Sequence record: NC_019521.1
DNA length: 64,000 nt
Strand: one strand, 5' to 3'
The notes beneath the pieces were generated by a model. That model was not told the DNA's origin. It worked only from the letters and a program-made list of their open reading frames with translations, and did no database searches. Shown in pieces: positions 25,329-59,069 of this stretch. Both the position numbers and the translations under genes were made by a program. Each line of letters begins with the position of its first letter. The first letter of the stretch is position 1.

Positions 25329-26543
25329 ATGCCACACAGATACGAAAGACTTAAAGAAAAATTTCTTGACCCTGAGAAATTGAAAAATGTTTCTAATGAG
25401 GAGTTACAAGAAATCTATAATGAGTTTCAAGCTTTAATGATAACTTATAAGACACGACAAATGTCTGTTAAACTTTCAGCTAACTCATTATATGGAGCTT
25501 CTGGAAATCAACATTATAGATTCGCGAATTATGAAGTAGCTTCTGATATTACCGGAGAGGGTGCTTATCATATGATTGCAATTGACAAAGCATTAAACAA
25601 ATATCTAAGAGCTTGGGATAAGGATTTAGAAATACAGAAAATTCTTAAAGAAAAATTCCCAGAACAAGATTTCAAATTTGTTCCAATCGATTGCGATGTT
25701 TGTAATTACGGTGACACAGATTCAAGATATATCGAATATGGTAAGATATTCAAAGCTTGTAATTTCGTTCCAAAGAGTCATGATGATTTAATCGATTTTG
25801 TTAAATTGATGGATGTTCATCGTGTTTCTCCTTTATTCGAAAAGGTTTTAACAGCTGAAGTTACTAGAAAGAATGGTAATAGTACAATGAAAATGGAACT
25901 TGAAGTTATGGGTGGTCGTGGGATTTTCTTAGCTAAGAAAATGTATGTGATGTCTGTAATTTGGAAAGATGGTCGTAATGTTGCTAAAGCTGGAAAAATT
26001 AAAGCAACAGGTGTCGAACTTAAACGTAAGACTTCTTCATTATTTGCTAAGAAAATGCAAGAACGTGTAATTCGAGCATTGTTAACTCCAACTTTCCCAG
26101 TAAATGATGTTTATAGATTAGCTGCTGGAATAGTTCAACATGCTAAAACATTAAGTTTAGATGAACTTTGTAGAATTACTAAGGTCAGTAAATATCATGA
26201 ATTCGTTATTGATGATAAAGAAAACTTGATTCTAGCTAAAGGTTCAAGACCTCCACAAAAAGGTTCAGCTAGATGGAATCATTTACTTTACAAACATGGA
26301 GTACTTGATAAATATGAACCATTATACGATGGTCGATTAAAATGGTATCTTGCTGAAGATGGTCAACCAATGGCTATTCCATTATCTTTAGATTCAACAA
26401 CTTACCCAGATTGGTTACCTAAGATTAATCATGCTGCTCAAATCGAAGCTATCATTATCAAACCATTACAAAGATATCTTCCGGAAAATGCATCAATTTC
26501 GAATCTTGGTAAATCGGTAATTCAAAACTCATTTGGTAATTAA
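25329..26543 (+). CDS. gp43: Family B DNA polymerase, C-terminal part (motifs B and C, thumb)
   Basis: KLSANSLYG (motif B), YGDTDS (motif C), MELE, AKKMY and KATGVELKR. Confidence 0.9.
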   Translation: MPHRYERLKEKFLDPEKLKNVSNEELQEIYNEFQALMITYKTRQMSVKLSANSLYGASGNQHYRFANYEVASDITGEGAYHMIAIDKALNKYLRAWDKDLEIQKILKEKFPEQDFKFVPIDCDVCNYGDTDSRYIEYGKIFKACNFVPKSHDDLIDFVKLMDVHRVSPLFEKVLTAEVTRKNGNSTMKMELEVMGGRGIFLAKKMYVMSVIWKDGRNVAKAGKIKATGVELKRKTSSLFAKKMQERVIRALLTPTFPVNDVYRLAAGIVQHAKTLSLDELCRITKVSKYHEFVIDDKENLILAKGSRPPQKGSARWNHLLYKHGVLDKYEPLYDGRLKWYLAEDGQPMAIPLSLDSTTYPDWLPKINHAAQIEAIIIKPLQRYLPENASISNLGKSVIQNSFGN

Positions 26544-28569: not shown

Positions 28570-28572
28570 AAA

Positions 28573-28617
28573 CGAAACCCTTGGAAACTGAAACTTCTGA
28601 GGGTTTCGTAGTACTAT
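28573..28617 (+). promoter_or_regulatory. Hairpin-embedded promoter GAAACT-N16-TACTAT (repeat copy 1)
   Basis: CGAAACCCT/AGGGTTTCG arms enclose GAAACT at 28590. Confidence 0.7.
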
Positions 28618-28663
28618 ACATTTATAAATAAATGGATTCCGTTACAAAGTAACGTATATAAAT

Positions 28664-29470
28664 ATGAAAACTATAAGTCAATTATACGAAGGTGTATCAA
28701 ATGAATTAGTATTTAATTTTGATCAAGACTCAGAATCTGATATCATATTATTGAATACTGGTTTGAAGAAATCTGATATGTTTGATTCAGTATTTCATTT
28801 TTCTTACGAATTTACAGATAAAGCTAGTTCATCTGACAGAACTAAGTTCTTTAACGAATTTAGATTTGGTGCTAATATAAGTAAAACTGACAGTAATAGA
28901 TTTATTTCTACAGCTATATCAAGATTAGATAAAGAAATAGATTTAAGGAAATTCGACGCTATAGTTTTACCTAGATCAAGGTCTGAAATCAATTCAAGAA
29001 TGCTAAAATTCATTACTAGAACATCAAGAATTAAACCTTTCAGTTTTGAACTAGTCAAAAAACAAACATCTGACATTAATTTCGACATAGATCGATTTAC
29101 TGACGAAGTATTGAATTCGACTGTTATGATGGGTTCGAAAGAAAGACCTAGATATACCGATAAACAAAAATCTGAAGCTTTACAAAAAATGAAAAACATT
29201 ATAGATTCTGTTAGAAAGTCTGATTATTTCAGTATAGCTGAATCTATCAAAACTAATAAACTAAAAGAATATGTTGAGGAATTCTTAGAATTTGAAAACG
29301 AAGAATCTAAAAATACTTACGAAAAATTAAAAGATAAGAACATTCTAGTAATCGATGATGTTACGACAACAGGTTCTACGATAATCGAAATAATCAAAAC
29401 TTTACAAGCTGTAAACAGATCAAATAAGATAGTTATCTTTTCGTTAATAGGTAAACCAAATCTTATGTAA
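28664..29470 (+). CDS. Type I phosphoribosyltransferase-fold protein carrying the MKTISQLYE leader
   Basis: PRPP-binding loop ILVIDDVTTTGSTI plus the N-terminal shared tag. Confidence 0.75.
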   Translation: MKTISQLYEGVSNELVFNFDQDSESDIILLNTGLKKSDMFDSVFHFSYEFTDKASSSDRTKFFNEFRFGANISKTDSNRFISTAISRLDKEIDLRKFDAIVLPRSRSEINSRMLKFITRTSRIKPFSFELVKKQTSDINFDIDRFTDEVLNSTVMMGSKERPRYTDKQKSEALQKMKNIIDSVRKSDYFSIAESIKTNKLKEYVEEFLEFENEESKNTYEKLKDKNILVIDDVTTTGSTIIEIIKTLQAVNRSNKIVIFSLIGKPNLM

Positions 29471-29476
29471 AAATAA

Positions 29477-29519
29477 AAACCCTCGGAAACTGAAACTTTC
29501 GAGGGTTTCGTAGTATAAT
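29477..29519 (+). promoter_or_regulatory. Hairpin-embedded promoter GAAACT-N16-TATAAT (repeat copy 2)
   Basis: AAACCCTCG/CGAGGGTTT arms. Confidence 0.7.
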
Positions 29520-30543: not shown

Positions 30544-31101
30544 ATGAAAACATTGACATTATCCGACTTCTTGAAAGAAAATCATTTCGATTTAGAAGTA
30601 CATAATCCGATTCATATCACTCCATATAATCTTCTTAGAAAGAATACGAAACTAGATTTCGATGTAATAGTTTTCGGTGTACCTTTACAACGTACAGTAG
30701 TTTGGAAAGAATATCAAAAACAAGAATTGATTCTAACGCTACTGAAAGGTCAGGAAATTCCTGAAATCTATGCTATTTGTCAATGCCATTACGATAAATC
30801 AGATAAAGTATATCAGATAATTGACGGTAAGCAAAGACTTACAACTATTCTAGATTTCATGGAAAATAAGTTTCCGATTCAATTCGGTAACGATTTGTTC
30901 ATGTACGATCATTTGGATGAACATTTACAGAGACGTATTTGGAATTGTTCTTTAAGAATGTCAATTGTCTATGAATATCCTGATACTATCGTTTCAGATA
31001 TTGACAAAATCAAATGGTTCAATCTTCTTAATTTCTCAGGTACTTTACAAAGTCATCAACATGAGAAAATGCTAAAAACGTTAATTAACGAAAATCAGTA
31101 A
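30544..31101 (+). CDS. Stand-alone DUF262 (GmrSD N-terminal/ParB-like) protein
   Basis: LQRTVVW...QKQELILTLLKGQEIP and IIDGKQRLTTI motifs. Confidence 0.8.
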   Translation: MKTLTLSDFLKENHFDLEVHNPIHITPYNLLRKNTKLDFDVIVFGVPLQRTVVWKEYQKQELILTLLKGQEIPEIYAICQCHYDKSDKVYQIIDGKQRLTTILDFMENKFPIQFGNDLFMYDHLDEHLQRRIWNCSLRMSIVYEYPDTIVSDIDKIKWFNLLNFSGTLQSHQHEKMLKTLINENQ

Positions 31102-31103
31102 AT

Positions 31104-31736
31104 ATGAAACTAGATCATAAAATATTCGATATTTTACATACGATAAACCTACCTATCAGAAAAGGTCTTTCTTATACCCCGAAAGACTTAATGGATGAAG
31201 ATTACTATGAAATCGATTTCGATGTAAAGTTATCAGATGGTTACAATTTACAAAGACCATTGGTTTGGAGCTATGTTCAAAAATCTGAATTGATACTTTC
31301 GATTCTGAAAGGTATTCAGTTACCTAATCTTTCAGTAATCATGAGTGAAACTGAAGAATATGTAACTAAAGTCTCCAACAAAAAGCTATTGAAAGTAATT
31401 GACGGTAAACAAAGACTTTCTACAATATTCGAATTTATTAGAGGTGAGTTTAATATCTATATTCCTGAATTGGAGGAAGCGTTACCTTCATTTAGTTTTC
31501 GAGAACTTGATGAAAAACTTCAAAGACGTATTCTTAACGCTCATCTAAGATTAGATATAGTTTACGAACATCCAGCTGATCCTGAATCAATAGTGTCAGA
31601 TATCGAATTAATCAAATGGTTTAGACTTATTAACTTCTCTGGAACTGAACAGGAAGCTGCTCATAACTTCCATCTTAATCGTAGACTATCTACACTAGTT
31701 TACGAAAGGAATCAACAAACAACTCATAAACGTTAA
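31104..31736 (+). CDS. Stand-alone DUF262 protein, paralogue of the upstream gene
   Basis: LQRPLVW...QKSELILSILKGIQLP, VIDGKQRLSTI, and shared IKWFxLxNFSGT. Confidence 0.8.
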   Translation: MKLDHKIFDILHTINLPIRKGLSYTPKDLMDEDYYEIDFDVKLSDGYNLQRPLVWSYVQKSELILSILKGIQLPNLSVIMSETEEYVTKVSNKKLLKVIDGKQRLSTIFEFIRGEFNIYIPELEEALPSFSFRELDEKLQRRILNAHLRLDIVYEHPADPESIVSDIELIKWFRLINFSGTEQEAAHNFHLNRRLSTLVYERNQQTTHKR

Positions 31737-38247: not shown

Positions 38248-38631
38248 ATGAAAACATTAGTTCAACTTTTCGAATCTAAAGATTATTCTAAGAACGATTT
38301 AGCTCTTATCGCTAAAGACACTATCGAAAGAATGTCTACAAAACGTTTAACTGATATCGAAGCTAAAATAAATTCGAATAACTCTTTATCTATTTCAGCT
38401 AAATCGGATGGTAAAGCTTTTAGTTTTAGTCTAAGATTTGTAGTTAAAACTAGAACGGTTAGTGATAAAGTTTCAGACTATGAGATTATCGTTATTACAG
38501 AAGGTTCGAATATCAATAGTACTAATTCGTTAAAACAATATAAGAAGTTACATGAAATGATATTCCTGAAATCTACTTTCAAGAATGAAATCACTTCAAC
38601 TGTTATCAAATCACTTCAAGGGAAATTCTAA
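38248..38631 (+). CDS. Putative capsid-internal protein (leader MKTLVQLFES)
   Basis: Shared N-terminal tag, in a late operon. Confidence 0.65.
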   Translation: MKTLVQLFESKDYSKNDLALIAKDTIERMSTKRLTDIEAKINSNNSLSISAKSDGKAFSFSLRFVVKTRTVSDKVSDYEIIVITEGSNINSTNSLKQYKKLHEMIFLKSTFKNEITSTVIKSLQGKF

Positions 38632-39029
38632 TGAAAACACTTTCGAAATTATACGAAGCTTTCGTAGAAAAAGAAATCGATACTAATTCTAATACGATAC
38701 ATAGAATAATAGCTGACGCTTTCAGAAGATGTGTATCAGTTGGTGAAATCAAGAGACTTAGAAATCTTGAAAGTTTAGAAATAGAAACTAACGGTAACGA
38801 ACATAAAGGTTTACTAGAATTCGAAGCTACAGTAAATCATGTAGAAAGAAAATTCAAAGCTCTTTATTCAGTAATCGATTCTAACGAAAGGATAAAAATA
38901 TCTATTATCATAAACCTTATAAACGAAGAAGTTTCTAGCATAAACGAAGAATTAGTAATCGAAGGAATTGACTTACAGAATCAAGTTATTCTGTTAGTTG
39001 AAAAATTATTACGTAATATAGAAATATAA
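38631..39029 (+). CDS. Putative capsid-internal protein (leader MKTLSKLYEA)
   Basis: Shared N-terminal tag. Confidence 0.65.
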   Translation: MKTLSKLYEAFVEKEIDTNSNTIHRIIADAFRRCVSVGEIKRLRNLESLEIETNGNEHKGLLEFEATVNHVERKFKALYSVIDSNERIKISIIINLINEEVSSINEELVIEGIDLQNQVILLVEKLLRNIEI

Positions 39030-39030
39030 A

Positions 39031-39696
39031 ATGAAAACAATATCAAAACTATACGAATCGAGACTTAACGAAAACTTGAATACAGAGTTATCATACTTTG
39101 CTAACGTAACTAAAGTTTCTAAAACATTTTTAGAAACTTTACCAAAAGTACAAAAAATAATAGATTCACATTATCCATCAAGTAAGTCTAAACTAATACT
39201 CGAACCATCTTTCTATACTGATTCGGTGAAAGTTTCTATAGGTAATGACAAATGGGGTTATGGATATTCATATGCTAGCAGTTATACAAAAACCCCTGAT
39301 CAGAATATGTTAGCTTTATGTTCTGAATTGTTTGATCTTAATGCTTTCGATTCTGTTGCTATAAACAATGGTACATTGAATTTATCGATCAGTTTCAATG
39401 ATTCAGCATCGTTACGAAAGAAAACTTTAGATAGTATTAAGAAATCAAAACTTGACGATTCTAAATTGAATTTTATAACACCTAGAAATCGTGATAATGT
39501 TTATCTTTATATTGACAATGTCTGGGTAAGTGCTCATATAATGGAAGAGGGTGGTTCTAAAATAAAATATGTTTTAGATAAACCTGACCCTGTAACTAAA
39601 GAAAGAGTTTTCTATGCAGACATGAAATCGTTTGTTTTTTCTGACCCATTAAAGGTTAAGAATTATGATAATGATTTAATTTTCTGGAAACCTTAA
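39031..39696 (+). CDS. Putative capsid-internal protein (leader MKTISKLYESRLNE)
   Basis: Shared N-terminal tag with a second LNE. Confidence 0.65.
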   Translation: MKTISKLYESRLNENLNTELSYFANVTKVSKTFLETLPKVQKIIDSHYPSSKSKLILEPSFYTDSVKVSIGNDKWGYGYSYASSYTKTPDQNMLALCSELFDLNAFDSVAINNGTLNLSISFNDSASLRKKTLDSIKKSKLDDSKLNFITPRNRDNVYLYIDNVWVSAHIMEEGGSKIKYVLDKPDPVTKERVFYADMKSFVFSDPLKVKNYDNDLIFWKP

Positions 39697-44520: not shown

Positions 44521-44796
44521 ATGAAATCACTTACGAAATTATACGAATCTAAACTTAACGAAAGTGAGGAAATCGACAAAGTAAAAATGAAACAGGCTTT
44601 GGTTACTTTTCAGAAGTCTAACGATCTAATAAAACTTGAAAAAGACTTACTAGCACTTAATCCATATAAAAACGGTATACAATACAATGCTTATATTGAC
44701 TGGATTAATGACAATATCAAATGGTATAAGAACGGTGATACTTATGTATTTTCTTTAACAAGCTCCGGATCGGTTCTTAATTCGTTAGACGATTAA
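44521..44796 (+). CDS. Putative capsid-internal protein (leader MKSLTKLYESKLNE)
   Basis: Shared tag. Confidence 0.65.
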   Translation: MKSLTKLYESKLNESEEIDKVKMKQALVTFQKSNDLIKLEKDLLALNPYKNGIQYNAYIDWINDNIKWYKNGDTYVFSLTSSGSVLNSLDD

Positions 44797-44799
44797 ATT

Positions 44800-45426
44800 A
44801 TGAAAACTCTTACTTCCCTACTATTCGAATCTTACAATTCTGACATAAGGAAACTTGAGTTAAAGCTTCAGTCTTTTGGTTATACTGTTCGACATGATAC
44901 AAGTAGACCAAAAGGCTTTGCTTTAGAAATTAGATTACCTAAGGATCAGTTATATGTACCTGAGGATTTAGAAATACTTTCTAAGAACTTGGAAGCTTAT
45001 CCTAATCTTTTAATGATCGATGCTAAAGTCGGGGAAGATAAGAATTACGTAGATTTCATCTTTCCAGTAACAGAAAGATTCGTTGATAAAGTTTATCATG
45101 TAACTTCTAAGAAATGGATAGAATCGATAACTGAAAAAGGTTTATTATGTTCTAGACCTACTGATGCTTCTGATAACATTAAGAAACATGAATCAAAAGA
45201 ATCTTTCAGAGATAGAAAATACAAAGCTGTTTTCGTAATATCGAATTTAGAAGACGCTAAGAAAGTTTCTAAGATGTTCGACTTCGAAGAACCTCAACTT
45301 ATCGAATTAGATACAAAGAATCTTAAATTTTTCGAAGATCCAATGATGCCTGAAGAAATGGATTCATTAGTTCATTTCGATGACATAGAACCAAAAAGAA
45401 TAATTAACATAACTGACATTAAATAA
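44800..45426 (+). CDS. Tagged protein with ADP-ribosyltransferase/Tpt1-like domain (leader MKTLTSLLFES)
   Basis: VYHVTSKKWIESITEKGLL, VFVISNLEDA, LIELDT, FEDP, DIEPKRI follow the ART-fold layout. Confidence 0.55.
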   Translation: MKTLTSLLFESYNSDIRKLELKLQSFGYTVRHDTSRPKGFALEIRLPKDQLYVPEDLEILSKNLEAYPNLLMIDAKVGEDKNYVDFIFPVTERFVDKVYHVTSKKWIESITEKGLLCSRPTDASDNIKKHESKESFRDRKYKAVFVISNLEDAKKVSKMFDFEEPQLIELDTKNLKFFEDPMMPEEMDSLVHFDDIEPKRIINITDIK

Positions 45427-45428
45427 AC

Positions 45429-45806
45429 ATGAAAACAATATCAAAATTATACGAAGCTAGTTCGGATTTCCAAATGATAGAATTCGAATCGATTAAAGCT
45501 ATAGAATTAGCTATAGCTAACTATTCAGCCTCGGTTAAGGGCTTACAACAAGAAGTAACAAGCATTAAGAATCATTTATCAAAAATACTTGGAAACAAAG
45601 TATCAGACATTAAAGATCTGAATGCTTCTTTAACTGCTGAAAAAGGTATTACGTACATAGAGGTACAACTTCAAGCTGATAAAGTTGAAAAATTTGGAAT
45701 GGAGGAAAGTAAAGCCTTTTCAAAAGTTTTACAAGCTAAAGGCATTACTAAACATAAAACCCAATTTGTCGGAACTAGTTCAATGTACATTACATTATAT
45801 TTCTAA
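45429..45806 (+). CDS. Putative capsid-internal protein (leader MKTISKLYEA)
   Basis: Shared tag. Confidence 0.65.
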   Translation: MKTISKLYEASSDFQMIEFESIKAIELAIANYSASVKGLQQEVTSIKNHLSKILGNKVSDIKDLNASLTAEKGITYIEVQLQADKVEKFGMEESKAFSKVLQAKGITKHKTQFVGTSSMYITLYF

Positions 45807-45808
45807 AC

Positions 45809-46180
45809 ATGAAAACTCTATCAAAACTATTCGAAGATCAAATCTTTAACGTTTCTTCAGTTTCTCAGTACTATCGAGAAAATATAGATTTACTGTTACC
45901 AGCTAAAGAAGTTCTTGACGAAAAGGATATTCAAATAGCTAAAGATAGAATTCTGAAAGAAAAAGAAGTTTTACCTAAGGGTCATAAGTATCTTATGATT
46001 AATGAAGCTCAGACATTAATGTTTATGGTTCTAGAACTTCAAGGTTCTAGATATCATGCAGTTCTTACAAGTGATACTGAGAGTACTGTATTTCAGACAT
46101 TAATAAACTGGGAACATGTTGAAGAATATGTCAAAGCTTTAGGATTAGATTTCGATTATTTCAAAGAATCGAAACTGTAA
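45809..46180 (+). CDS. Putative capsid-internal protein (leader MKTLSKLFED)
   Basis: Shared tag. Confidence 0.65.
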   Translation: MKTLSKLFEDQIFNVSSVSQYYRENIDLLLPAKEVLDEKDIQIAKDRILKEKEVLPKGHKYLMINEAQTLMFMVLELQGSRYHAVLTSDTESTVFQTLINWEHVEEYVKALGLDFDYFKESKL

Positions 46181-46295: not shown

Positions 46296-48050
46296 ATGTT
46301 AGGTTACAATAGAAACGCAGGTAGACCCAATTCTGGGAATCTATCAAAGAAATTCAGTAAATTAGGACCGATTATCAAATCGATTGGTAACTTCGGTATC
46401 GTCATAAATAAGAAAGTTCTTGACAAAAAGACTGCTATACCTGAAGACCCAAGATTAGAAGGTGACATTTATTCGATTCTTGATACGATTGGAACTCGTT
46501 CAATGAATCAAACTTCATATCCTCAATATAATCAAAACGATCAAGTACAAAGACAAGCTAGACGTTGGCATTTAATTACAATGTCTAAACATCCAGAACT
46601 TGAAGATATTATTGAAACGTTAACTGATGAAGCTATTGTATATGATAAGAATGCTACTTACTGCTGTTCTGCTATTCTAAATACTTTGATGTTAGACGAA
46701 AAGATAATTAGTTCTAAAGATTCTAAAGACCTTGAAGAATTAGTTACAGAAAAGTTCCCAGCTTTATATAGAATGTTAGGTCTTTATAAATCTGGTGCTA
46801 AATCTTTGATGCAAGAATGGTTAGTTGAAGGTAAGAAAGCTTGGGAGATTGTATACGATTCATTAGATAATCCTAAATCGATTATAGGTTTAGTTCCGAT
46901 AGACCCATTATCATTAATTGAACATTGGGATGAAGATGGTAACAGATGGTGGATTCAGGAACCAAATCTTACTCAACAATCTAGTGCTATGGGTGTTACT
47001 AGAGCTATGGGTGGTCAAAGAACATTACATGACTCACAGGTAATATATTGGGATTGGGACCCAACAGGATTTAAGTTTTCTTATCTTGAAAGACTTTTAA
47101 GAACGTTTAATGTTTACCGAGCTATCGAAAGAATGAAAGTTAACTGGTGGGTTATGAACTCTCAGTTTAGAACTATGATCGTTATTCCAACTCATGGTAA
47201 ATCTAGACAACGCGCTGCTGAGGTATTAGCTGCAGCAATGCAAAGATATCGAGATCATGTTGAATTCTCTGATGAAGATGGAACGGTTAAAGTAAATGGT
47301 TCAGCGAACATTCCAGCGAATAAGGAATATTGGTTAGCTGATACTTCGTCTGGAAAACCTGAAGTTTCTACAGTAGGGGGTGACGGATATGACTTGTCAA
47401 GTGCTGATACTTCATGGTCTAAACGAAATCTGTTAGAACTTTCTAAAGTACCTTTGGATAGATTCGACCCTAGTTCTTCAGAATCATGGAATCTTGACCC
47501 AACATCTTCAAGACGTCAAGAATTGAAATTCGCTAAGTTTGTCCAAACGTTAAGAACTTCAATGTCTGAGATAATGCTAAAACCTCTGATTATTCAAATA
47601 TGTTTAGATCGCCCTAATCTGACAAATAATTACGAATTACTTGATGCGATTACTATAGATTTCTTATCTGAAAACATCTTTACTCAAAAGATCGAAATGG
47701 AAATCATGAAAGAACGTACTGAATTCATTGGTGAAATGATGGACAAGCTTAAACGTGTTGACGCTGACGGTAACGAAAAACCTTTCTTCTCTTTGAAATT
47801 CTTGATGGACAAATACATGATGTTAACTCCTGAAGAACTTGAACAAAATGCGAAAGCTCTTAAAGAAGAGGAAAAGGAAATGGAAGAATTCAGTAGAAAA
47901 CAGAATACAATTTCAGCTGAAATGGAAGCTGAGAAAGCTGAATATACAAAAGAATTCGAAGAAGATGATTCTAAATCTTTATACGAATCTATAAAGGCTA
48001 AAAGAATCAAACGGAAAACAACAAAAGACATTACAAAATACAGAATATAA
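46296..48050 (+). CDS. gp20: Portal protein (T4 gp20-like)
   Basis: HPELEDIIETLTDEAIV, WLVEGK, SYLERLLRTFN, KEYWL, EVSTVGG, QELKFAKFVQTLR. Late box at 46264. Confidence 0.9.
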   Translation: MLGYNRNAGRPNSGNLSKKFSKLGPIIKSIGNFGIVINKKVLDKKTAIPEDPRLEGDIYSILDTIGTRSMNQTSYPQYNQNDQVQRQARRWHLITMSKHPELEDIIETLTDEAIVYDKNATYCCSAILNTLMLDEKIISSKDSKDLEELVTEKFPALYRMLGLYKSGAKSLMQEWLVEGKKAWEIVYDSLDNPKSIIGLVPIDPLSLIEHWDEDGNRWWIQEPNLTQQSSAMGVTRAMGGQRTLHDSQVIYWDWDPTGFKFSYLERLLRTFNVYRAIERMKVNWWVMNSQFRTMIVIPTHGKSRQRAAEVLAAAMQRYRDHVEFSDEDGTVKVNGSANIPANKEYWLADTSSGKPEVSTVGGDGYDLSSADTSWSKRNLLELSKVPLDRFDPSSSESWNLDPTSSRRQELKFAKFVQTLRTSMSEIMLKPLIIQICLDRPNLTNNYELLDAITIDFLSENIFTQKIEMEIMKERTEFIGEMMDKLKRVDADGNEKPFFSLKFLMDKYMMLTPEELEQNAKALKEEEKEMEEFSRKQNTISAEMEAEKAEYTKEFEEDDSKSLYESIKAKRIKRKTTKDITKYRI

Positions 48051-48718: not shown

Positions 48719-48916
48719 ATGAAAACATTAACACAATTATATGAATCTGTAATCGATGATTCGGATAAAGAATTTTTGAAATCGGAATTGAAACATATCG
48801 ATAATCAAATAGATAAGCTTATGAAGTTATCAAAGATATCTGATAAACAACAAGCTTATTGGGATAAGCTAGAGCTTGATAAAAATGAAATTATAGAACT
48901 ATTGAAAACAAAATGA
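48719..48916 (+). CDS. Putative capsid-internal protein (leader MKTLTQLYES)
   Basis: Shared tag, 65 aa, helical hairpin-like. Confidence 0.65.
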   Translation: MKTLTQLYESVIDDSDKEFLKSELKHIDNQIDKLMKLSKISDKQQAYWDKLELDKNEIIELLKTK

Positions 48917-49383
48917 AAACGTTAGTTCAACTATTCGAAGACTTATCACTCGATGTATCTAAAGCGATACGTCGAGAACTTGATACAAATTTCAAAGGGT
49001 TTCGTAAACATCAGAATCGTCATGATATCGAAGCTTTAATTGGTGATGCTATGAGAAACTCAGCTTTACCTTTTATAAGACATGCAGCTGAATACGTAAC
49101 TCCTGATAAATTCAAATCTGGTAAGCATATTAATTCTGGATATTGTGTTCAATTCGCTGAGTATATTTTAGATCATGTTCATTCTCGTAACGTTAAGATG
49201 ATGGGTGATGTCGATCATCATGTAATGTTGAAAGACAACGTAACAGGTCTTTATTATGACGCTGAGCATCCAGATGGTATAACTTTAGAAGATTTCCGTA
49301 ATACTACATGGATGAAAAATCCTGACAAAGTTGTACAGTTCTTAAGAAACAAAGAAGTTAAGGAAATTGATTACATGCAATAA
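48913..49383 (+). CDS. Tagged protein with possible Cys-His-Asp (papain/transglutaminase-like) triad (leader MKTLVQLFED)
   Basis: INSGYCVQFA...HHVML...YYDAEHPDG. Confidence 0.45.
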   Translation: MKTLVQLFEDLSLDVSKAIRRELDTNFKGFRKHQNRHDIEALIGDAMRNSALPFIRHAAEYVTPDKFKSGKHINSGYCVQFAEYILDHVHSRNVKMMGDVDHHVMLKDNVTGLYYDAEHPDGITLEDFRNTTWMKNPDKVVQFLRNKEVKEIDYMQ

Positions 49384-49407: not shown

Positions 49408-50148
49408 ATGAAAAATATATCCATAATATCAAGTATTGACAAACGTTCAATGCTTTTCGAAGCTGTAAGTGACGGATTAATACCAGTACCTGATGGTATG
49501 ATGCGTGTTTCTGGAGTAATAGCTAAGATGGACGTTATGAATAATAACGGACGTTTTTATACTAAAGAAAACTATACAAAACATATTGATTCTATTCAGG
49601 ATAAAATCGCTACCGGTCTTTATGGAGAAATGGAACATCCTGATAGCTTTAATATCAATTATAATAACGTTTCTCATAAAGTTGAAAAACTTTGGTATGA
49701 TCATGCTACCGATGAAGTCAAAGGTATATTTCTACTTTTAGATAACGAAAAAGGTAAAACTGCTCAAGCTATTGTTAAATCTGGTGGTACTCTTAGATGT
49801 TCTACTAGATGTGCTGGTGATGTAGCGAAAGGTAATGAAGCTCGTATAAGTAAATTCTATACAGTCGATTTAGTCGGTACTCCTGGATTCGATGAAGCTA
49901 AATTATTCTTGATGGAATCTTTAGATTTTACATCTAAATCAAATAGTTCAGATATTAAACTTTTGAATGAAGATGATAACAGTATTGTATATGTTTCAGA
50001 ACTTAAACAAATGCTTTTAGAATCTAAGAAATATGTAACTAACGATTCAGCTTTATTAGAAGCTTTAAATGAAAGAACTAATCTAGTTTCTTCGAAGGAA
50101 TCTAAGAAGCTTTATGAATCTATTAAATCGAAAATACTTAAACGATAA
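49408..50148 (+). CDS. gp21: Prohead protease (T4 gp21-like)
   Basis: NNNGRFY, YGEMEHPD, VSHKV, GKTAQAIV..G..L.CSTR, DLVGTPGF. Confidence 0.9.
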   Translation: MKNISIISSIDKRSMLFEAVSDGLIPVPDGMMRVSGVIAKMDVMNNNGRFYTKENYTKHIDSIQDKIATGLYGEMEHPDSFNINYNNVSHKVEKLWYDHATDEVKGIFLLLDNEKGKTAQAIVKSGGTLRCSTRCAGDVAKGNEARISKFYTVDLVGTPGFDEAKLFLMESLDFTSKSNSSDIKLLNEDDNSIVYVSELKQMLLESKKYVTNDSALLEALNERTNLVSSKESKKLYESIKSKILKR

Positions 50149-50150
50149 AA

Positions 50151-50984
50151 ATGAAAACATTAACACAATTATATGAAGCTATAGTTATATCTAAAGATTA
50201 TCCTAAATTTGATTCGTCTAATAAAGATATCGAAAAATATCTTCTAAATATTGCAAACGAATTAAAGAAATCTGAAGGTTTTAACAAATATAGAGGGGTT
50301 TACGATTTTAAAAGCAGATATAACTACGGACAAGGAATAATAGATCATACTGTAATACTCGAATGGTCTGCACCATTATCAGAATGTTTTAAATCTTTAG
50401 GTGTATCTAAATCTGAAGCTATATTGATTTCAGATTTAGGTAAGAATGCTGAAAAGCTAACAACTATCAAATTTAAATTACAGGTACATATTCGTGAAAA
50501 AATATCATCTGATCAAACTATCGATAAATTTGAAAACTATTACAGTGGTACTTTAGACGCTACTATTTATAATCATAATTTCAGTAGAATAGTTTCGTAT
50601 ATGTCTGGATATTATTCTGGTGGTTCTGATGATAAGTATACTTACGATAGAACACAAGAAAGCTTTGATAAGTCTGATAGAATTTTCGATTTAATAAATT
50701 TCGTAACTAGTAATATCAACGCTTATAATAAAGAATACAATCCAGTTTTGATATCATCTAACAGTTCTATTCTTAGTAATGAAGCTTCTTCAGTTTATTC
50801 TAGAATATCAAAAAATAAAACTGACAATTTATACGACTTTACGGATTTTATTAAGAAACATGGTGAAGCTAAACTTTTAAATCTATTAAAGAAATCTTCA
50901 ACGTTTAAAGCTTTCTTAGATAAGGATCATTATAAAGATGGTATCTTATCGAAAACTTCTATCTGGTCAGAAACATACGATTAA
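50151..50984 (+). CDS. Putative capsid-internal protein (leader MKTLTQLYEA)
   Basis: Shared tag, directly after the protease gene. Confidence 0.65.
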   Translation: MKTLTQLYEAIVISKDYPKFDSSNKDIEKYLLNIANELKKSEGFNKYRGVYDFKSRYNYGQGIIDHTVILEWSAPLSECFKSLGVSKSEAILISDLGKNAEKLTTIKFKLQVHIREKISSDQTIDKFENYYSGTLDATIYNHNFSRIVSYMSGYYSGGSDDKYTYDRTQESFDKSDRIFDLINFVTSNINAYNKEYNPVLISSNSSILSNEASSVYSRISKNKTDNLYDFTDFIKKHGEAKLLNLLKKSSTFKAFLDKDHYKDGILSKTSIWSETYD

Positions 50985-50993
50985 ACTATAAAA

Positions 50994-51305
50994 ATGAAAA
51001 CGATAAATCAATTATACGAAGCTAAGCTTAATGAAGCTTATGGTACAGAACATCTCGAAGATCAAAATGCTGAATTAGGTGCATTAGTTAAAGACTTAAA
51101 GGATGTAAAAGTTGGGAAAACTTACTGCATTGTAGATTTAGGTTTAGAGGAATGGAATTCTGGATATAAACTTAAAGCGATAAAAGGTAATATGTACATC
51201 TTTGACGATTTACTAGGTTCTCCTTTAGATAAAGAAGTTTTCGAATTTACTAGAGGTGACATTTTAGAATTAATATATGACAAAGCTATAGCTTTCGAAA
51301 AATAA
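50994..51305 (+). CDS. Putative capsid-internal protein (leader MKTINQLYEAKLNE)
   Basis: Shared tag. Confidence 0.65.
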   Translation: MKTINQLYEAKLNEAYGTEHLEDQNAELGALVKDLKDVKVGKTYCIVDLGLEEWNSGYKLKAIKGNMYIFDDLLGSPLDKEVFEFTRGDILELIYDKAIAFEK

Positions 51306-51312
51306 AAACAAA

Positions 51313-51735
51313 ATGAAAACAATATCAAAATTATACGAAGCTAAATTAAATGAAGCTTCAAACTATGATCCATACGAATGGGGTGAAACTGTAATGAAGG
51401 CTGTTAAATCGTTAGCTTCATCTTTGAAACTTAAAGATATTAAAATCCATGAAGCTCATTCTGATGATGGCGAAGGTTACGGTCATGGTATAATCGATTT
51501 TAAGAAAGATGGTGTACCATATTATATCGATTATCATATAACTCTTGAATTACATCATGGACTAGAATTAGGTGATTTAGAAATCCAATTAGGTGTTTAT
51601 GAAGATTCTGATGAACCATATGCACCAAATGATGACGTTGATAAAACTTTCAAGAAAGTTTCTGGTCAAGACGAACCAAAGGTTATTTCGAAAATGGTAA
51701 CAGATTTCTTGAAATCTACTAAAGTTTTGAAATAA
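51313..51735 (+). CDS. Putative capsid-internal protein (leader MKTISKLYEAKLNE)
   Basis: Shared tag, acidic body. Confidence 0.65.
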   Translation: MKTISKLYEAKLNEASNYDPYEWGETVMKAVKSLASSLKLKDIKIHEAHSDDGEGYGHGIIDFKKDGVPYYIDYHITLELHHGLELGDLEIQLGVYEDSDEPYAPNDDVDKTFKKVSGQDEPKVISKMVTDFLKSTKVLK

Positions 51736-51796: not shown

Positions 51797-52824
51797 ATGT
51801 CTAAAAATAATCTAACAGTTGCTCAAAAAGTAAATGCGCTTGTTGAGTCACATATCAAAACAAAATTGATTCCAGTTTTACAAGAGAATCAAAAACAAAT
51901 GTTTGCGATGATCGATCAACATCTTATGGAGAACTTCGGTCCTGCTGTAGTTGCTTTCATTAAAGGTAAAGGTCAAGCTCTTAACGAATCTCAAAACGAA
52001 GAGATTACAAATTCTTTCCGTAATTTCCTTTTGGAAAATGCTGAAGAGGATGTAGCTGAAGAAGTTAAAGAACTTGAAGATAAACTTGAAGACAAGAAAG
52101 AAGAACTTGAAGATTTGAAACTTGAAGAATCTAAACTTGTTAAGAAAGCTAAAGCTTTAAACGAAGCTAAGGATGAAGCTCACGAAGATGAGGAATTATC
52201 TGAAGAAGAAGAAGAAGAAATCATTGATGAAATCGAACTTCAAGAATCTTTGAATACTAAATCACTTACTAAAGTTCGTCGTAAAATGAAACTTGTTGAA
52301 AGTGAATTGGAAGAAATCGCTGACGAATTACAAGATTTAGGTGCTATGGCTACTGAAGATACTGGAATTCCAGCTGATGAAGTTGAATTATCTGAAGAAG
52401 AATTGGAAGAGCTTGAAGGTGAGGAACTTTATGAAGCTTTGAAAACTCGTGTTGCTAAGAAAAGTAAACGTAATGGTAGTCTTTTAGAATCTATCAAAAA
52501 CGATATCGCTAAAGCAAAACGTCTTGACGCAAAAAAAAAGTAAACAAGCTTAACGAAAACGTTAACGAAGATACTAACGTTCTAAAAAATATTCCTGATG
52601 AATTTAAAGCTTTATATGAATCTTTAAGTCCTGAAGCGAAAGATGTTTTAAACGAAAATGCTAGAAATGCTAACCTTGATACGTTATCAGGAGTTCGCAA
52701 CTTCTTTCAGAATACAAACTTCAAAAGCTTACAACAACGTAATGCTTTGAATAAGTTAAATGAAAGTCAAGAAACTAAGCAATCTGGATTAGCGTTTGTT
52801 ACTAACTTACTTAAACCATTTTAA
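51797..52824 (+). CDS. Prohead scaffold (gp22-like); 248 aa to the stop at 52543, about 342 aa with a -1 shift at A9 (52531-52539)
   Basis: Acidic coiled coil with many L-x-E motifs, between protease and capsid. The -1 frame stays open to TAA 52822-52824 and encodes KLNEN, LYES, VLNEN, KLNES. Confidence 0.75.
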
Positions 52825-52914: not shown

Positions 52915-54672
52915 ATGTCTTTTAAATATACTAGGATTAATCCTGCACAAGCCCAGAAAAAATGGGGTGCTAAATTAAACGAATCTTTCGAGTCTATCAA
53001 AACTCTTCCAGGTTTTGCTAACAAGATGAATATGATTTCGAAACTTGCTGCTATTAAGGAACTTAATGACGGTGGAGTTAACAAGGGAGAACGTGCTCTT
53101 ATGGAGAACTATCAAATCTCTGGAACTGGTGATATTCTTGGAATGGGTCCATCTACATGGCCTTCTGATCCAGGTACTGCTCCAGGAAATGAAGAAGGTG
53201 CTTGGACTAAACCAACCTACAAAAAAGGTTCTGGTGATGTTCCTTCAATGATCTTCGGATTAGCGATGAACGTTGCTGCTTACACTGTAGGTTTCGATAT
53301 CGTTCACACTATTCCAGTTGATACTCCGACAGCAGCTTTCCAATTCTTGGATTCTATTTACGCTGGTGGTAAACTTAACGAAGCTGGAAATCCTCCTTCT
53401 TACATGAAAGTAAGTTCAGTTAAACTTCGTGCTGGATTCGATTACAGTACTTTGGTTAAAGGTGGTCATGTATTCTTCAAAACTAAAGGAGATGATACTG
53501 CAGTTCATGGTATTTTCATGGGTAAATCGTTCTTCGATGGTGGTTTAATGATCAAACTTGAATCTACTGGTACTATCGCTACTAACGTTTATACTAAAAC
53601 TGATGCTATCTCTGTAGCTGATGTATTTACTGACGCTGGTGTTGAAGTAATTCCTGGTTCTTCTGCTACTGCAGTTGATGGTACTGCTTTAGATATCGAA
53701 GTTGCACAAGCTGAATACGTTGAATCTTTCCGTGAACATGTACAAGGTTTCACTAACAGTGACCAAATTACTCCACGTTCTATGGATAGAGCAACAGGTG
53801 AGCAAGGAACTCGTTCAGTATTGAACTTACGTTTATGGTCAACTTCTTTGGAAATGCGTACAGTTGAAGTACTTGCTGATATCACTAAAACTCAGTTGAA
53901 AGACTTAAGTGCATATGGTATCGATGGTGTTGCTCAGTTGTACAAAGCTTCTCAAAACGAATTGATTCAGTCAATTAACGATGAGATCATAACTGAATTC
54001 ACTCGTTTAGGTGTTACTAACCACGCTCAATTATTCGCAGCTCAAAACTTGAACTTGAACTTATTTATCGCTCCTGCTGGAACAGCTAATAAGCCTTTGA
54101 CTCAGTTTAACTACGGAGAATTCAAAGACGTTCAAGGTGTTGATCGTGCAGCTGAATTTGGTAATATCATAAACGCTGAGAATAACTCTGCAGCAGAAAA
54201 TACTTACACTCGTCAACGTAGAATTTACTCTCGTTTATTAGCCGCTTCAGCTATTATCGGTACAATTTCTCGTTACGGTTCTGGTGATGTTGCGGTAGTT
54301 GGTCCACAAACAGCAGTTGCGTTACAAGATTCTAAATCTTTCACTGCAGTTCCAATGGAAAACAACTTAGGTTCAACAGCTGATTTACATTACATTGGTA
54401 ACGTAAATGGTATCCGTATCTATGTTAACCCTAAATGGTCATGGGATGATAAACGTATATCTGTTGGACGTCAAGGTCAAGACGATCAACCAGGTTTGAA
54501 ATTCTTTGCTTACGATTTAGCTAGCTCTGTAGAGGTTATCGATTCTTCTACTTACGCTCCTAAAATCTGTGTTACTTCACGTTTCGCAGTTCAAGCATGT
54601 GGTTTCCATCCTGAGGCTTCTTACTTAACTTTCGTTGTCAACTCCGATTTCGGTGGTGATACTTGGGTATAA
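52915..54672 (+). CDS. gp23: Major capsid protein (T4 gp23-like)
   Basis: 585 aa with VAAYTVGFDIV, TPTAAFQFL, QSINDEII, NGIRIYVNP, SRFAV. Late box at 52866 and a strong terminator after it. Confidence 0.9.
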   Translation: MSFKYTRINPAQAQKKWGAKLNESFESIKTLPGFANKMNMISKLAAIKELNDGGVNKGERALMENYQISGTGDILGMGPSTWPSDPGTAPGNEEGAWTKPTYKKGSGDVPSMIFGLAMNVAAYTVGFDIVHTIPVDTPTAAFQFLDSIYAGGKLNEAGNPPSYMKVSSVKLRAGFDYSTLVKGGHVFFKTKGDDTAVHGIFMGKSFFDGGLMIKLESTGTIATNVYTKTDAISVADVFTDAGVEVIPGSSATAVDGTALDIEVAQAEYVESFREHVQGFTNSDQITPRSMDRATGEQGTRSVLNLRLWSTSLEMRTVEVLADITKTQLKDLSAYGIDGVAQLYKASQNELIQSINDEIITEFTRLGVTNHAQLFAAQNLNLNLFIAPAGTANKPLTQFNYGEFKDVQGVDRAAEFGNIINAENNSAAENTYTRQRRIYSRLLAASAIIGTISRYGSGDVAVVGPQTAVALQDSKSFTAVPMENNLGSTADLHYIGNVNGIRIYVNPKWSWDDKRISVGRQGQDDQPGLKFFAYDLASSVEVIDSSTYAPKICVTSRFAVQACGFHPEASYLTFVVNSDFGGDTWV

Positions 54673-58294: not shown

Positions 58295-58537
58295 ATGAAA
58301 ACGTTAACACAATTATACGAAGCTGAAGAAATTCCAGCAAAAAGAAAATTCTTTGTAAGTCAAAGAGGTGTTGCTGACTTTAAGAAAGATTTGAAGATGA
58401 ACGGTATGAAATATGAAGAACTTAAAGGTAACAATTTCATACTTGATAATTCAAATCCTGGTAAGGTAAACATGGCTGTAAAAATGGTAAGGGAACGTGT
58501 AGGTTCTCAAAATATCAAAGAAAAATTCGATTTTTAA
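58295..58537 (+). CDS. Putative capsid-internal protein (leader MKTLTQLYEA)
   Basis: Shared tag, with its own late box at 58269. Confidence 0.65.
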   Translation: MKTLTQLYEAEEIPAKRKFFVSQRGVADFKKDLKMNGMKYEELKGNNFILDNSNPGKVNMAVKMVRERVGSQNIKEKFDF

Positions 58538-58539
58538 TC

Positions 58540-58881
58540 ATGCCAGTCTGGTTAAAGGAACAACCCAATAACTTACAGATACTTCATTCAGAACTATTAG
58601 ACAACTACGTTCAGTCATGGATTGAACGTAGTTTTCAAATCATTCCACCACATTCTATGGATACGAATTACATTACATGGAAATGTTTCGGATGTTCTAA
58701 ACCATTATCTGTAAAATTCGATTCAGTAAATCATAAAGATTTCTGTTGTAAGAATTGTAAACATTTTGCAGTAGGTAAACCTAATGCTATAATGTTACGT
58801 TTTATGTGGTCGTTTAATATGCACATACAATCAAGAATCATAAACAATTCAGCTAATTTGTCTGAATTACTAGAACAATAA
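58540..58881 (+). CDS. Zinc-ribbon protein
   Basis: CFGC...CKNC. Confidence 0.6.
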   Translation: MPVWLKEQPNNLQILHSELLDNYVQSWIERSFQIIPPHSMDTNYITWKCFGCSKPLSVKFDSVNHKDFCCKNCKHFAVGKPNAIMLRFMWSFNMHIQSRIINNSANLSELLEQ

Positions 58882-58883
58882 AA

Positions 58884-59069
58884 ATGAAAACATTAAAGTC
58901 AATGTTCGAGTCAATCATCAAGGATGATATGTCTCCGATATATGATAAAGCTAAAGACAAATCATATAACAAGAAAACAAATGACAATTCTGAAATGTCA
59001 CCAACTTATGACAAAGTTAAAGCTGGTAAGAACAAATCAGACGATTACGAAATGTCACCAACTAAATAA
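58884..59069 (+). CDS. Tagged repeat micro-protein (leader MKTLKSMFES)
   Basis: (D/E)MSP(I/T)(YD)K repeated three times. Confidence 0.55.
   Translation: MKTLKSMFESIIKDDMSPIYDKAKDKSYNKKTNDNSEMSPTYDKVKAGKNKSDDYEMSPTK

Follow-up and report, generated by a model that had tools for sequence, protein, structure and literature searches.

A phosphoribosyltransferase-fold protein of jumbo phage PAU carries a T4-like N-terminal tag and is a candidate for delivery from the phage head

Few enzymes are known to travel in phage heads, T4 Alt and the virion RNA polymerases being examples. In T4, a capsid-targeting sequence (CTS) made up of the first 10 residues of internal protein IPIII is enough to have foreign proteins packaged. 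Its residues 4 and 7 are important in targeting and its residues 8 and 10 in processing, the protease gp21 cleaves after the Glu of an L/I-x-E motif, and the enzyme Alt is packaged by the same route (PMC9026906, PMC5694885). The phosphoribosyltransferase (PRTase) fold is not among the T4 cargo named in these reviews. It is found in ShosT, a toxin of a bacterial defence system that consists of an N-terminal hydrolase/pyrophosphatase (PPase) domain and a C-terminal PRTase domain (PMC11961720), and whose toxicity requires the DD pair and binding of phosphoribosyl pyrophosphate (PRPP) and disturbs purine metabolism (PMC11961720, PMC12961424). Here we describe gp114 of Sphingomonas phage PAU (JQ362498), a jumbo myovirus of 219 kb, and compare it with both systems. 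The gene lies in a 64,000-nt stretch of PAU DNA (genome positions 62001-126000), hereafter the window. The title of one paper gives Sphingobacterium as the true PAU host.

The open reading frame (ORF) in question is identical to gp114 at JQ362498 90664-91470, which the record labels merely "gp114", and a six-frame genome search identified it as the sole PRTase-domain gene of PAU. An earlier interpretation made from the letters alone (the sequence-only reading) had described an N-terminal MKTISQLYEG, a PRPP loop VIDDVTTTGST and a stand-alone gene between two hairpins. Every one of these details was present: gp114 is a single gene flanked by two copies of a conserved hairpin element (Table 1).

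The N-terminus had also been read as a capsid tag, and it proved to be a real peptide signal of many PAU genes that resembles the T4 CTS in look and placement. In nineteen PAU ORFs the ORF start reads MK[TSG][LI]xx[LM][YF]E, with A, S, G or D as the next residue; every one of them is encoded on the + strand, and several continue with KLNE[AS]. When [LI]xE[AGSD] was sought within residues 4-12, 22 PAU ORFs were obtained compared with 5.1 +/- 2.4 in shuffled proteins, which places this N-terminal tag family far beyond chance. The gp114 tag shares eight of its nine residues with the MKTISKLYE of three proteins from the head-module region. According to the T4 record, IPIII and IPII start with MKTYQEFIAE↓A and IPI with MKTFKEF...ITE↓A (arrows mark cleavage sites here and predicted sites in PAU proteins). 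Like these peptides and that of Alt, the PAU tag is short, starts with MKT, has hydrophobic residues at positions 4 and 7 and ends in [LI]-x-E before a small residue; as with the T4 internal proteins, one peptide stands on many unrelated small proteins. In contrast to T4, the PAU tag is one residue shorter, with the cut predicted after E9 instead of E10. The predicted gp114 protease site (L7-Y8-E9↓G10) fits the L/I-x-E rule, the predicted mature protein (G10-M268) would begin with GVSNELVFNFDQ..., and residues 1-8 are disordered in the AlphaFold2 model of gp114.

All copies of the tag start with ATG AAA and stand exactly at the ORF start, a pattern that would also be expected if the shared N-terminus were no targeting peptide but a signal acting in translation initiation or at the mRNA level, or were left over from duplication of a gene start. 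However, codons 3, 4, 7 and 8 differ synonymously between copies and the 30 nt upstream of the tagged ORFs have nothing in common, which indicates that the peptide is conserved and not a DNA repeat or promoter. The [LI]xE[AS] motif is also found internally in the protease, the scaffold candidate, the capsid protein and the portal, and related phages place different peptide variants at the same spot. We consider a non-targeting origin of the shared N-terminus very improbable.

PHROGs and Pfam scans of 14 other tagged PAU proteins gave no family match. One protein with a variant of the tag, gp144 (44800-45426; MKTLTSLLFE), has a sole homologue that starts with MRRLISMLFE; its AlphaFold2 model was poor (predicted local distance difference test, pLDDT, of 58) and gave no ADP-ribosyltransferase (ART) match, an ART fold being neither reproduced nor refuted. 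The head regions of the related phages MA9V-1 and pT24 showed no comparable tag family, and the protease there is fused to a large scaffold.

Tag removal would call for a protease of the gp21 type, and PAU encodes a T4-type prohead protease of family S77, gp151, along with a portal of the T4 type and a capsid protein of the gp23 type. From the portal gene, a 221-aa ORF and two tagged ORFs lead to the protease gene, which is followed by three tagged ORFs, a 248-aa ORF and the capsid gene. The two tagged ORFs ahead of the protease hold what we take to be the position of T4 genes 67/68. Predicted cleavage sites are unevenly distributed over the proteome, where [LI]xE[AGS] occurs on average 0.33 times per 100 aa. 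The 248-aa protein has the densest set of all (3.2 per 100 aa) and is a good candidate for a gp22-like scaffold; it is acidic, is encoded just upstream of the capsid gene and has no family match. Five sites are found in gp151, namely LFE16↓A and four [L]xE[AS] motifs near the C-terminus, and related proteases cut themselves near their C-termini. The capsid protein has sites at KLNE23↓S and LNE156↓A. Further downstream, a 113-aa ORF (58540-58881) that was not identified as tagged lies between two ORFs that were.

The tag was next compared across relatives of gp114. A word search recovered 72 full-length relatives (35-48% identity). About 55 of these are Bacteroidales homologues that start with M-G-[VI]-x-[FY], aligned exactly at G10 of PAU, whereas all ten phage-type homologues (10/10) have an extension of 6-32 residues ending in [LI]xE directly before the G. 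In four metagenomic phage contigs the PRTase homologue has the local variant of the tag, and genes sharing that variant lie near it, mostly directly adjacent (Table 1). Homologues from related phages carry their own phage's variant, and cellular homologues are without a tag. Contigs L002, L009 and L010 have further genes in common with PAU. In a maximum-likelihood tree, PAU grouped with MK-tagged sequences, and two Bacteroidales-type representatives formed one tight clade (100/100) nested among diverse extended sequences; since the tree was rooted at its midpoint only, we claim no direction of transfer. On contig L102 (10001-16559) the PRTase homologue heads a run of genes whose N-termini end in NE before A, S or C. 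Three genes of this run start with M(K/R)IFK.N..NE, and one gene of the run has an AAT/peptidase C45 domain; the run gives the impression of a complete cassette of candidate head cargo.

Assignment of gp114 to the PRTase fold rests on conservation and on structure prediction. The Pfam family Pribosyltran (PF00156; gathering threshold 26.3 bits) scored 25.2 bits in an hmmscan of gp114 and 27.0 bits in the six-frame genome search, with the alignment restricted to the PRPP-loop region; all NCBIfam models were far below cut-off, and the best hit of a PDB sequence search had an E value of 0.009. The PRPP loop of gp114 aligns with those of HGPRT, OPRT and ComF, and residues 227-239 (ILVIDDVTTTGST) comprise a hydrophobic strand, two acidic residues and the T/S-G-x-T phosphate grip. 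In an alignment (A1) of 25 of the 72 word-search homologues, D231, T235, G237 and T239 of this loop were invariant and D232 nearly so. The predicted pyrophosphate (PPi) loop, P-x-S-x-S-x-x-N, is invariant at P103, S107 and N110 and nearly so at S105, and lies between a predicted strand (residues 99-103) and a predicted helix (residues 109-121) of the AlphaFold2 model. The long stretch that joins the second strand to the third was invariant at K132, Y164 and K169 and nearly so at P162.

The AlphaFold2 model itself, generated from A1, had a pLDDT of 76 and a predicted template modelling score (pTM) of 0.69, and its strand order and loops fit the PRTase canon of a five-stranded parallel core with a PPi loop and a flexible loop. 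Every match listed by Foldseek against the PDB was a PRTase or a PRTase-fold protein such as PyrR, and the first 35 rows of an independent VIA-align search were likewise all PRTase-fold proteins, with a HGPRT chimera as best match (Z 8.5, 128 residues aligned), H. pylori XGHPRT (Z 8.4) and ComF (Z 8.4, 158 residues, the longest structural alignment) close behind and ShosT at Z 6.1 (146 residues). These Z values are middling in absolute terms. Because the match list was uniform and the PRPP loop invariant, we regard the predicted type I PRTase fold as well supported, in agreement with the enzyme class first proposed for this gene; this support does not extend to catalysis or to the acceptor.

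None of the described PRTases matches gp114 throughout. With the 6-oxopurine PRTases (HGPRT, XGPRT; top fold matches at Z 8.3-8.5) it shares the canonical acidic pair and the phosphate-binding PRPP loop, but it differs from them in having ~95 residues between the second and third core strands and a separate N-terminal region of 90 residues, shows no sequence similarity to them outside the PRPP loop and misses the NCBIfam equivalog cut-offs by >100 bits. ComF/ComFC (TIGR00201; PDB 7P0H) offers the best structural coverage, and as in ComF little follows the PRPP loop and last strand before the C-terminus. The TIGR00201 match (E 6e-6) ends at the end of the model, and the nearest named ESM Atlas cluster by structure is a ComF family from Bacteroidota. 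These likenesses would suit a packaged protein without catalytic activity that, like ComFC, binds nucleic acid or a nucleotide and serves DNA condensation in the head, end protection or entry. Unlike ComF, however, gp114 has no zinc-finger N-terminus and no link to competence genes. With zero cysteines and a TIGR00201 score ~200 bits below the cut-off (26.3 against 233.6 bits), gp114 is not a ComF. Moreover, strong conservation of all three substrate loops points to a functional active site, and we judge a purely binding role improbable.

ShosT is the third point of reference. The PADLOC ShosT model PDLC03962, which has no curated cut-off, matched residues 146-266 of gp114 (E 2.6e-7, 28.7 bits) and covered nearly the whole domain in gp114 homologues, while a gp114-family profile searched against PDB sequences did not reach ShosT. 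The two proteins are alike in their non-canonical PRTase domain (~260 residues), in which the flexible loop is long and the PPi loop extended (ShosT, PDB 8ZVB). In contrast to ShosT, gp114 is a single domain without the N-terminal hydrolase domain, is phage-encoded and does not lie in a defence island; its neighbours gp113 (80 aa) and gp115 (141 aa, without a Pfam match) are too small for a full DprA-like ShosA. Lacking both the N-terminal domain and a ShosA-like partner, gp114 is a distant relative and not a ShosT. Two family members, P0072 and P0192, have the gp114-family PRTase fused to an N-terminal YAcAr SLOG/DprA-like domain and resemble a fusion of ShosA-like and ShosT-like parts.

Taken together, we consider it reasonably likely that gp114 is packaged in the head, is processed by the protease, enters the host together with the DNA and there acts on PRPP as a PRTase-like enzyme. 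We infer a route that runs from targeting, cleavage and packaging through ejection to catalysis and a host effect. MKTISQLYE would act like the T4 capsid-targeting sequence and bring gp114 into the scaffolding core of the prohead, where gp151 would cut it after E9 (L-Y-E↓G). The mature protein would stay in the head with the DNA until infection, when it would be ejected into the Sphingobacterium host. Inside the host cell it could bind PRPP via its intact PRPP loop, PPi loop and long flexible loop and transfer the phosphoribosyl group to some acceptor, or simply consume PRPP, such that host nucleotide metabolism might be perturbed from the first minute, as with the distantly related toxin ShosT. 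The sequence-only reading had likewise proposed that the injected enzyme could drain PRPP or counter host defences. For an enzyme as CTS cargo, T4 Alt provides the precedent.

Several observations weigh against delivery from the head. The first concerns promoters. TATAAATA is the T4 late promoter, and the sequence-only reading had assigned this role to a copy at 28623. The octamer is present at that position, but its late-promoter role did not stand: in the PAU genome TATAAATA shows little strand bias (18 on +, 9 on -), is intergenic in only 7 cases and is found before none of the portal, protease, scaffold, capsid or tail genes. These genes instead have TATACATA 12-80 nt upstream (window positions include 46264, 49387, 51754, 52866, 56955 and 59852). 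With 50 copies on + and 2 on -, 40 of them intergenic, TATACATA is, judged by its placement, the probable PAU counterpart of the T4 late promoter, one position different, and TATAAATA was rejected for that role. Each of the other 18 tagged genes has a perfect TATACATA 0.03-3.4 kb upstream. The sole exception is gp114, for which the nearest perfect copy is 14 kb upstream, and which departs from the T4 cargo pattern both in this respect and in its location outside the head gene cluster. With just a 7/8 late box inside a class-B promoter, gp114 may be expressed late or at another stage.

This class-B element, a second promoter-like class in PAU, consists of AACTGAAACTTT, a spacer and then GTAGTAyWAT, which occurs 23 times on + and once on - in the PAU genome, always between genes. 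Copies include 28572-28617, 29477-29519 and the 40742 region, and ~12 copies are embedded in a hairpin of 12-15 bp whose pairing is kept by compensatory changes (CTCGG/CCGAG compared with CATGT/ACATG). No shuffled sequence folded as well as either of the two hairpins flanking gp114.

The second concerns genomic setting. gp114 sits in the replication region, adjoining a split DNA polymerase, and a neighbouring protein weakly matches sigma-region-2 (E 0.0067); its phage homologues adjoin genes for ribonucleotide reductase (RNR), DNA ligase, deoxynucleoside monophosphate (dNMP) kinase, UvrD and Dam methylase. Such replication and nucleotide-metabolism neighbourhoods in PAU and its relatives keep alive the alternative that gp114 is a cytoplasmic enzyme of nucleotide metabolism that serves replication, by base salvage or by supplying an unusual nucleotide, and whose N-terminus merely resembles the tag. 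The class-B promoter in place of a perfect late one, the best fold matches, which are 6-oxopurine salvage enzymes, and the heavy modification of PAU DNA (PMC7824862) would all suit such a role. It leaves unexplained, however, why eight of nine tag residues are identical to those of three head-module-region proteins, why in four related contigs the tag changes along with the phage (the L102 homologue even heading a tagged run) and why cellular homologues are entirely without a tag. Nor did we find genes for PRPP synthetase, NAD (nicotinamide adenine dinucleotide) reconstitution or another salvage partner in PAU. Overall, a cytoplasmic role appears unlikely.

The remaining points concern the sequence evidence itself. 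Matches in Pfam, NCBIfam and PDB sequences cover the PRPP loop only and lie at or below family cut-offs. In addition, E stands right before the conserved G in 62 of 98 full-length family representatives, in some after just 3-5 residues; because E-G is common family-wide, the [LI]xE-G junction may be partly structural, which weakens the argument drawn from the ten phage-type homologues. This commonness does not appear to explain the identity of the PAU tag to MKTIS.LYE or the co-variation of the tag with neighbouring genes. Finally, searches for a PAU virion proteome, RNA-seq data or sequencing runs returned none.

Table 1 Features of the window (window coordinates) and, in the last four rows, tags of gp114 homologues on metagenomic phage contigs
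Feature	Position	Strand	Basis or remark
Upstream hairpin of class-B element	28572..28609	+	-21.6 kcal/mol, z -6.5
Class-B promoter-like box GTAGTACTAT	28608..28617	+	GTAGTAyWAT consensus
TATACATt, 7/8 match to late box TATACATA, 49 nt before gp114 ATG	28615..28622	+	Box search
TATAAATA	28623..28630	+	Probably not a PAU late promoter
gp114 ORF, 268 aa, PRTase-fold protein with N-terminal tag	28664..29470	+	Identity to PAU gp114, AlphaFold2 model, fold matches
Tag/predicted propeptide MKTISQLYE (residues 1-9), predicted cut after E9 before G10	28664..28690	+	19 PAU ORFs, T4 likeness, homologue starts
Predicted PPi loop PRSRSEIN (residues 103-110), after first core strand	28970..28993	+	Conservation, predicted secondary structure
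PRPP-binding loop VIDDVTTTGST (residues 229-239)	29348..29380	+	Conservation, PF00156 match
Downstream hairpin of next class-B element, possible gp114 terminator and gp115 promoter	29477..29508	+	-16.4 kcal/mol, z -4.0
Three consecutive tagged ORFs (127, 132, 221 aa)	38248..39696	+	Tag search
Four consecutive tagged ORFs (91, 208, 125, 123 aa)	44521..46180	+	Tag search
T4-type portal (gp20 family)	46296..48050	+	PF07230, 296-297 bits
Two tagged ORFs (65, 156 aa) between portal and protease	48719..49383	+	Tag search
gp151, T4-type prohead protease (Peptidase_S77), predicted tag remover	49408..50148	+	PF03420, 40 bits
Three tagged ORFs (277, 103, 140 aa) right after protease	50151..51735	+	Tag search
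248-aa scaffold candidate, 8 [LI]xE[AGS] sites	51797..52543	+	Site density
gp23-type major capsid protein	52915..54672	+	PF07068, 51 bits
Two tagged ORFs (80 aa, 58295-58537; 61 aa, 58884-59069)	58295..59069	+	Tag search
L009 homologue MKSLAKHILE			Near MKSLSKHLTE, MKTLSQHLNE (1.5-5 kb downstream)
L010 homologue MKTLQSCILE			Near MKSLNSTIQE (two genes upstream)
L103 homologue MKSLKQHIKHQPILE			Near MKSLSTFLTE, MKKLQSHIEE
L102 homologue MKTFSEYICE			Near run of genes starting M(K/R)IFK.N..NE↓[AS]

The family to which gp114 belongs is large and without a name. An exhaustive profile search returned 881 cluster representatives at E <= 0.001, 132 of them at E <= 1e-30. In the ESM Atlas, the clusters nearest to gp114 are labelled "hypothetical protein" and are 45-100% viral in all but one case, with few taxon-labelled members; the exception is the second feature-based cluster, in which 67% of the taxon-labelled members are bacterial. 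A sample of 301 genomes of the family had bacterial copies in 18 (~6%), several of them degraded. The tag-less Bacteroidales copies (L014-L072) are 65-78% identical to one another, and some have the middle deleted or contain stop codons. Their neighbours differ per species, which marks an accessory, mobile-looking gene. A linkage to guaA, seen in L004-L006, was rejected after it recurred at just 1 of 59 other loci; no neighbour was conserved. A copy on a 673-kb IMG/VR megaphage contig (L013:9859-10702) is frameshifted and has an in-frame TGA where its relatives have Q, and is either a pseudogene or evidence of another genetic code in this megaphage.

Two further observations concern the genes around gp114. 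The polymerase gene gp110 (25329-26543) encodes just the C-terminal part of a family B DNA polymerase, with the YGDTDS region, and the polymerase is likewise split over two separate genes in the relative MA9V-1. Downstream of gp114, two short proteins of 185 and 210 aa are encoded in tandem (30544-31736). The first has a match to the DUF262/GmrSD N-terminal domain; its neighbour looks alike in sequence.

The principle of delivery by a short N-terminal propeptide is already known from T4; what is new is the proposed type of cargo. Also new are the tag's clear portability to a protein that has no tag in its cellular homologues and the proposed extension of the T4 principle to jumbo phages of Bacteroidota, a group that, in contrast to the situation in T4, includes the PAU host. 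Literature searches found no paper describing any of these points. A wider proposal, which we advance tentatively and with considerable doubt, is that the mostly phage-borne ShosT-like PRTases are a recurrent capsid-delivered effector. Each lineage would use its own head propeptide, the Bacteroidales branch being tag-less; the enzyme would be harmless while locked in the capsid and, once injected, would act at time zero by consuming PRPP or by phosphoribosylating a metabolite of the host, shutting down the nucleotide or NAD supply or nucleotide-based defence signalling.

If it is packaged, gp114 would be the first PRPP-using enzyme carried in a phage head, as far as is known or was found described. 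A jumbo phage of Bacteroidota, together with its metagenomic relatives, would then follow the T4 capsid-targeting principle almost to the letter, and a nameless family of at least 881 sequence clusters would gain its first functional handle. Delivery of gp114 would also tie an effector used by a phage to a PRTase toxin used in bacterial defence. The tag itself provides a sequence rule for listing candidate injected proteins of these phages and may become a tool to package foreign proteins.

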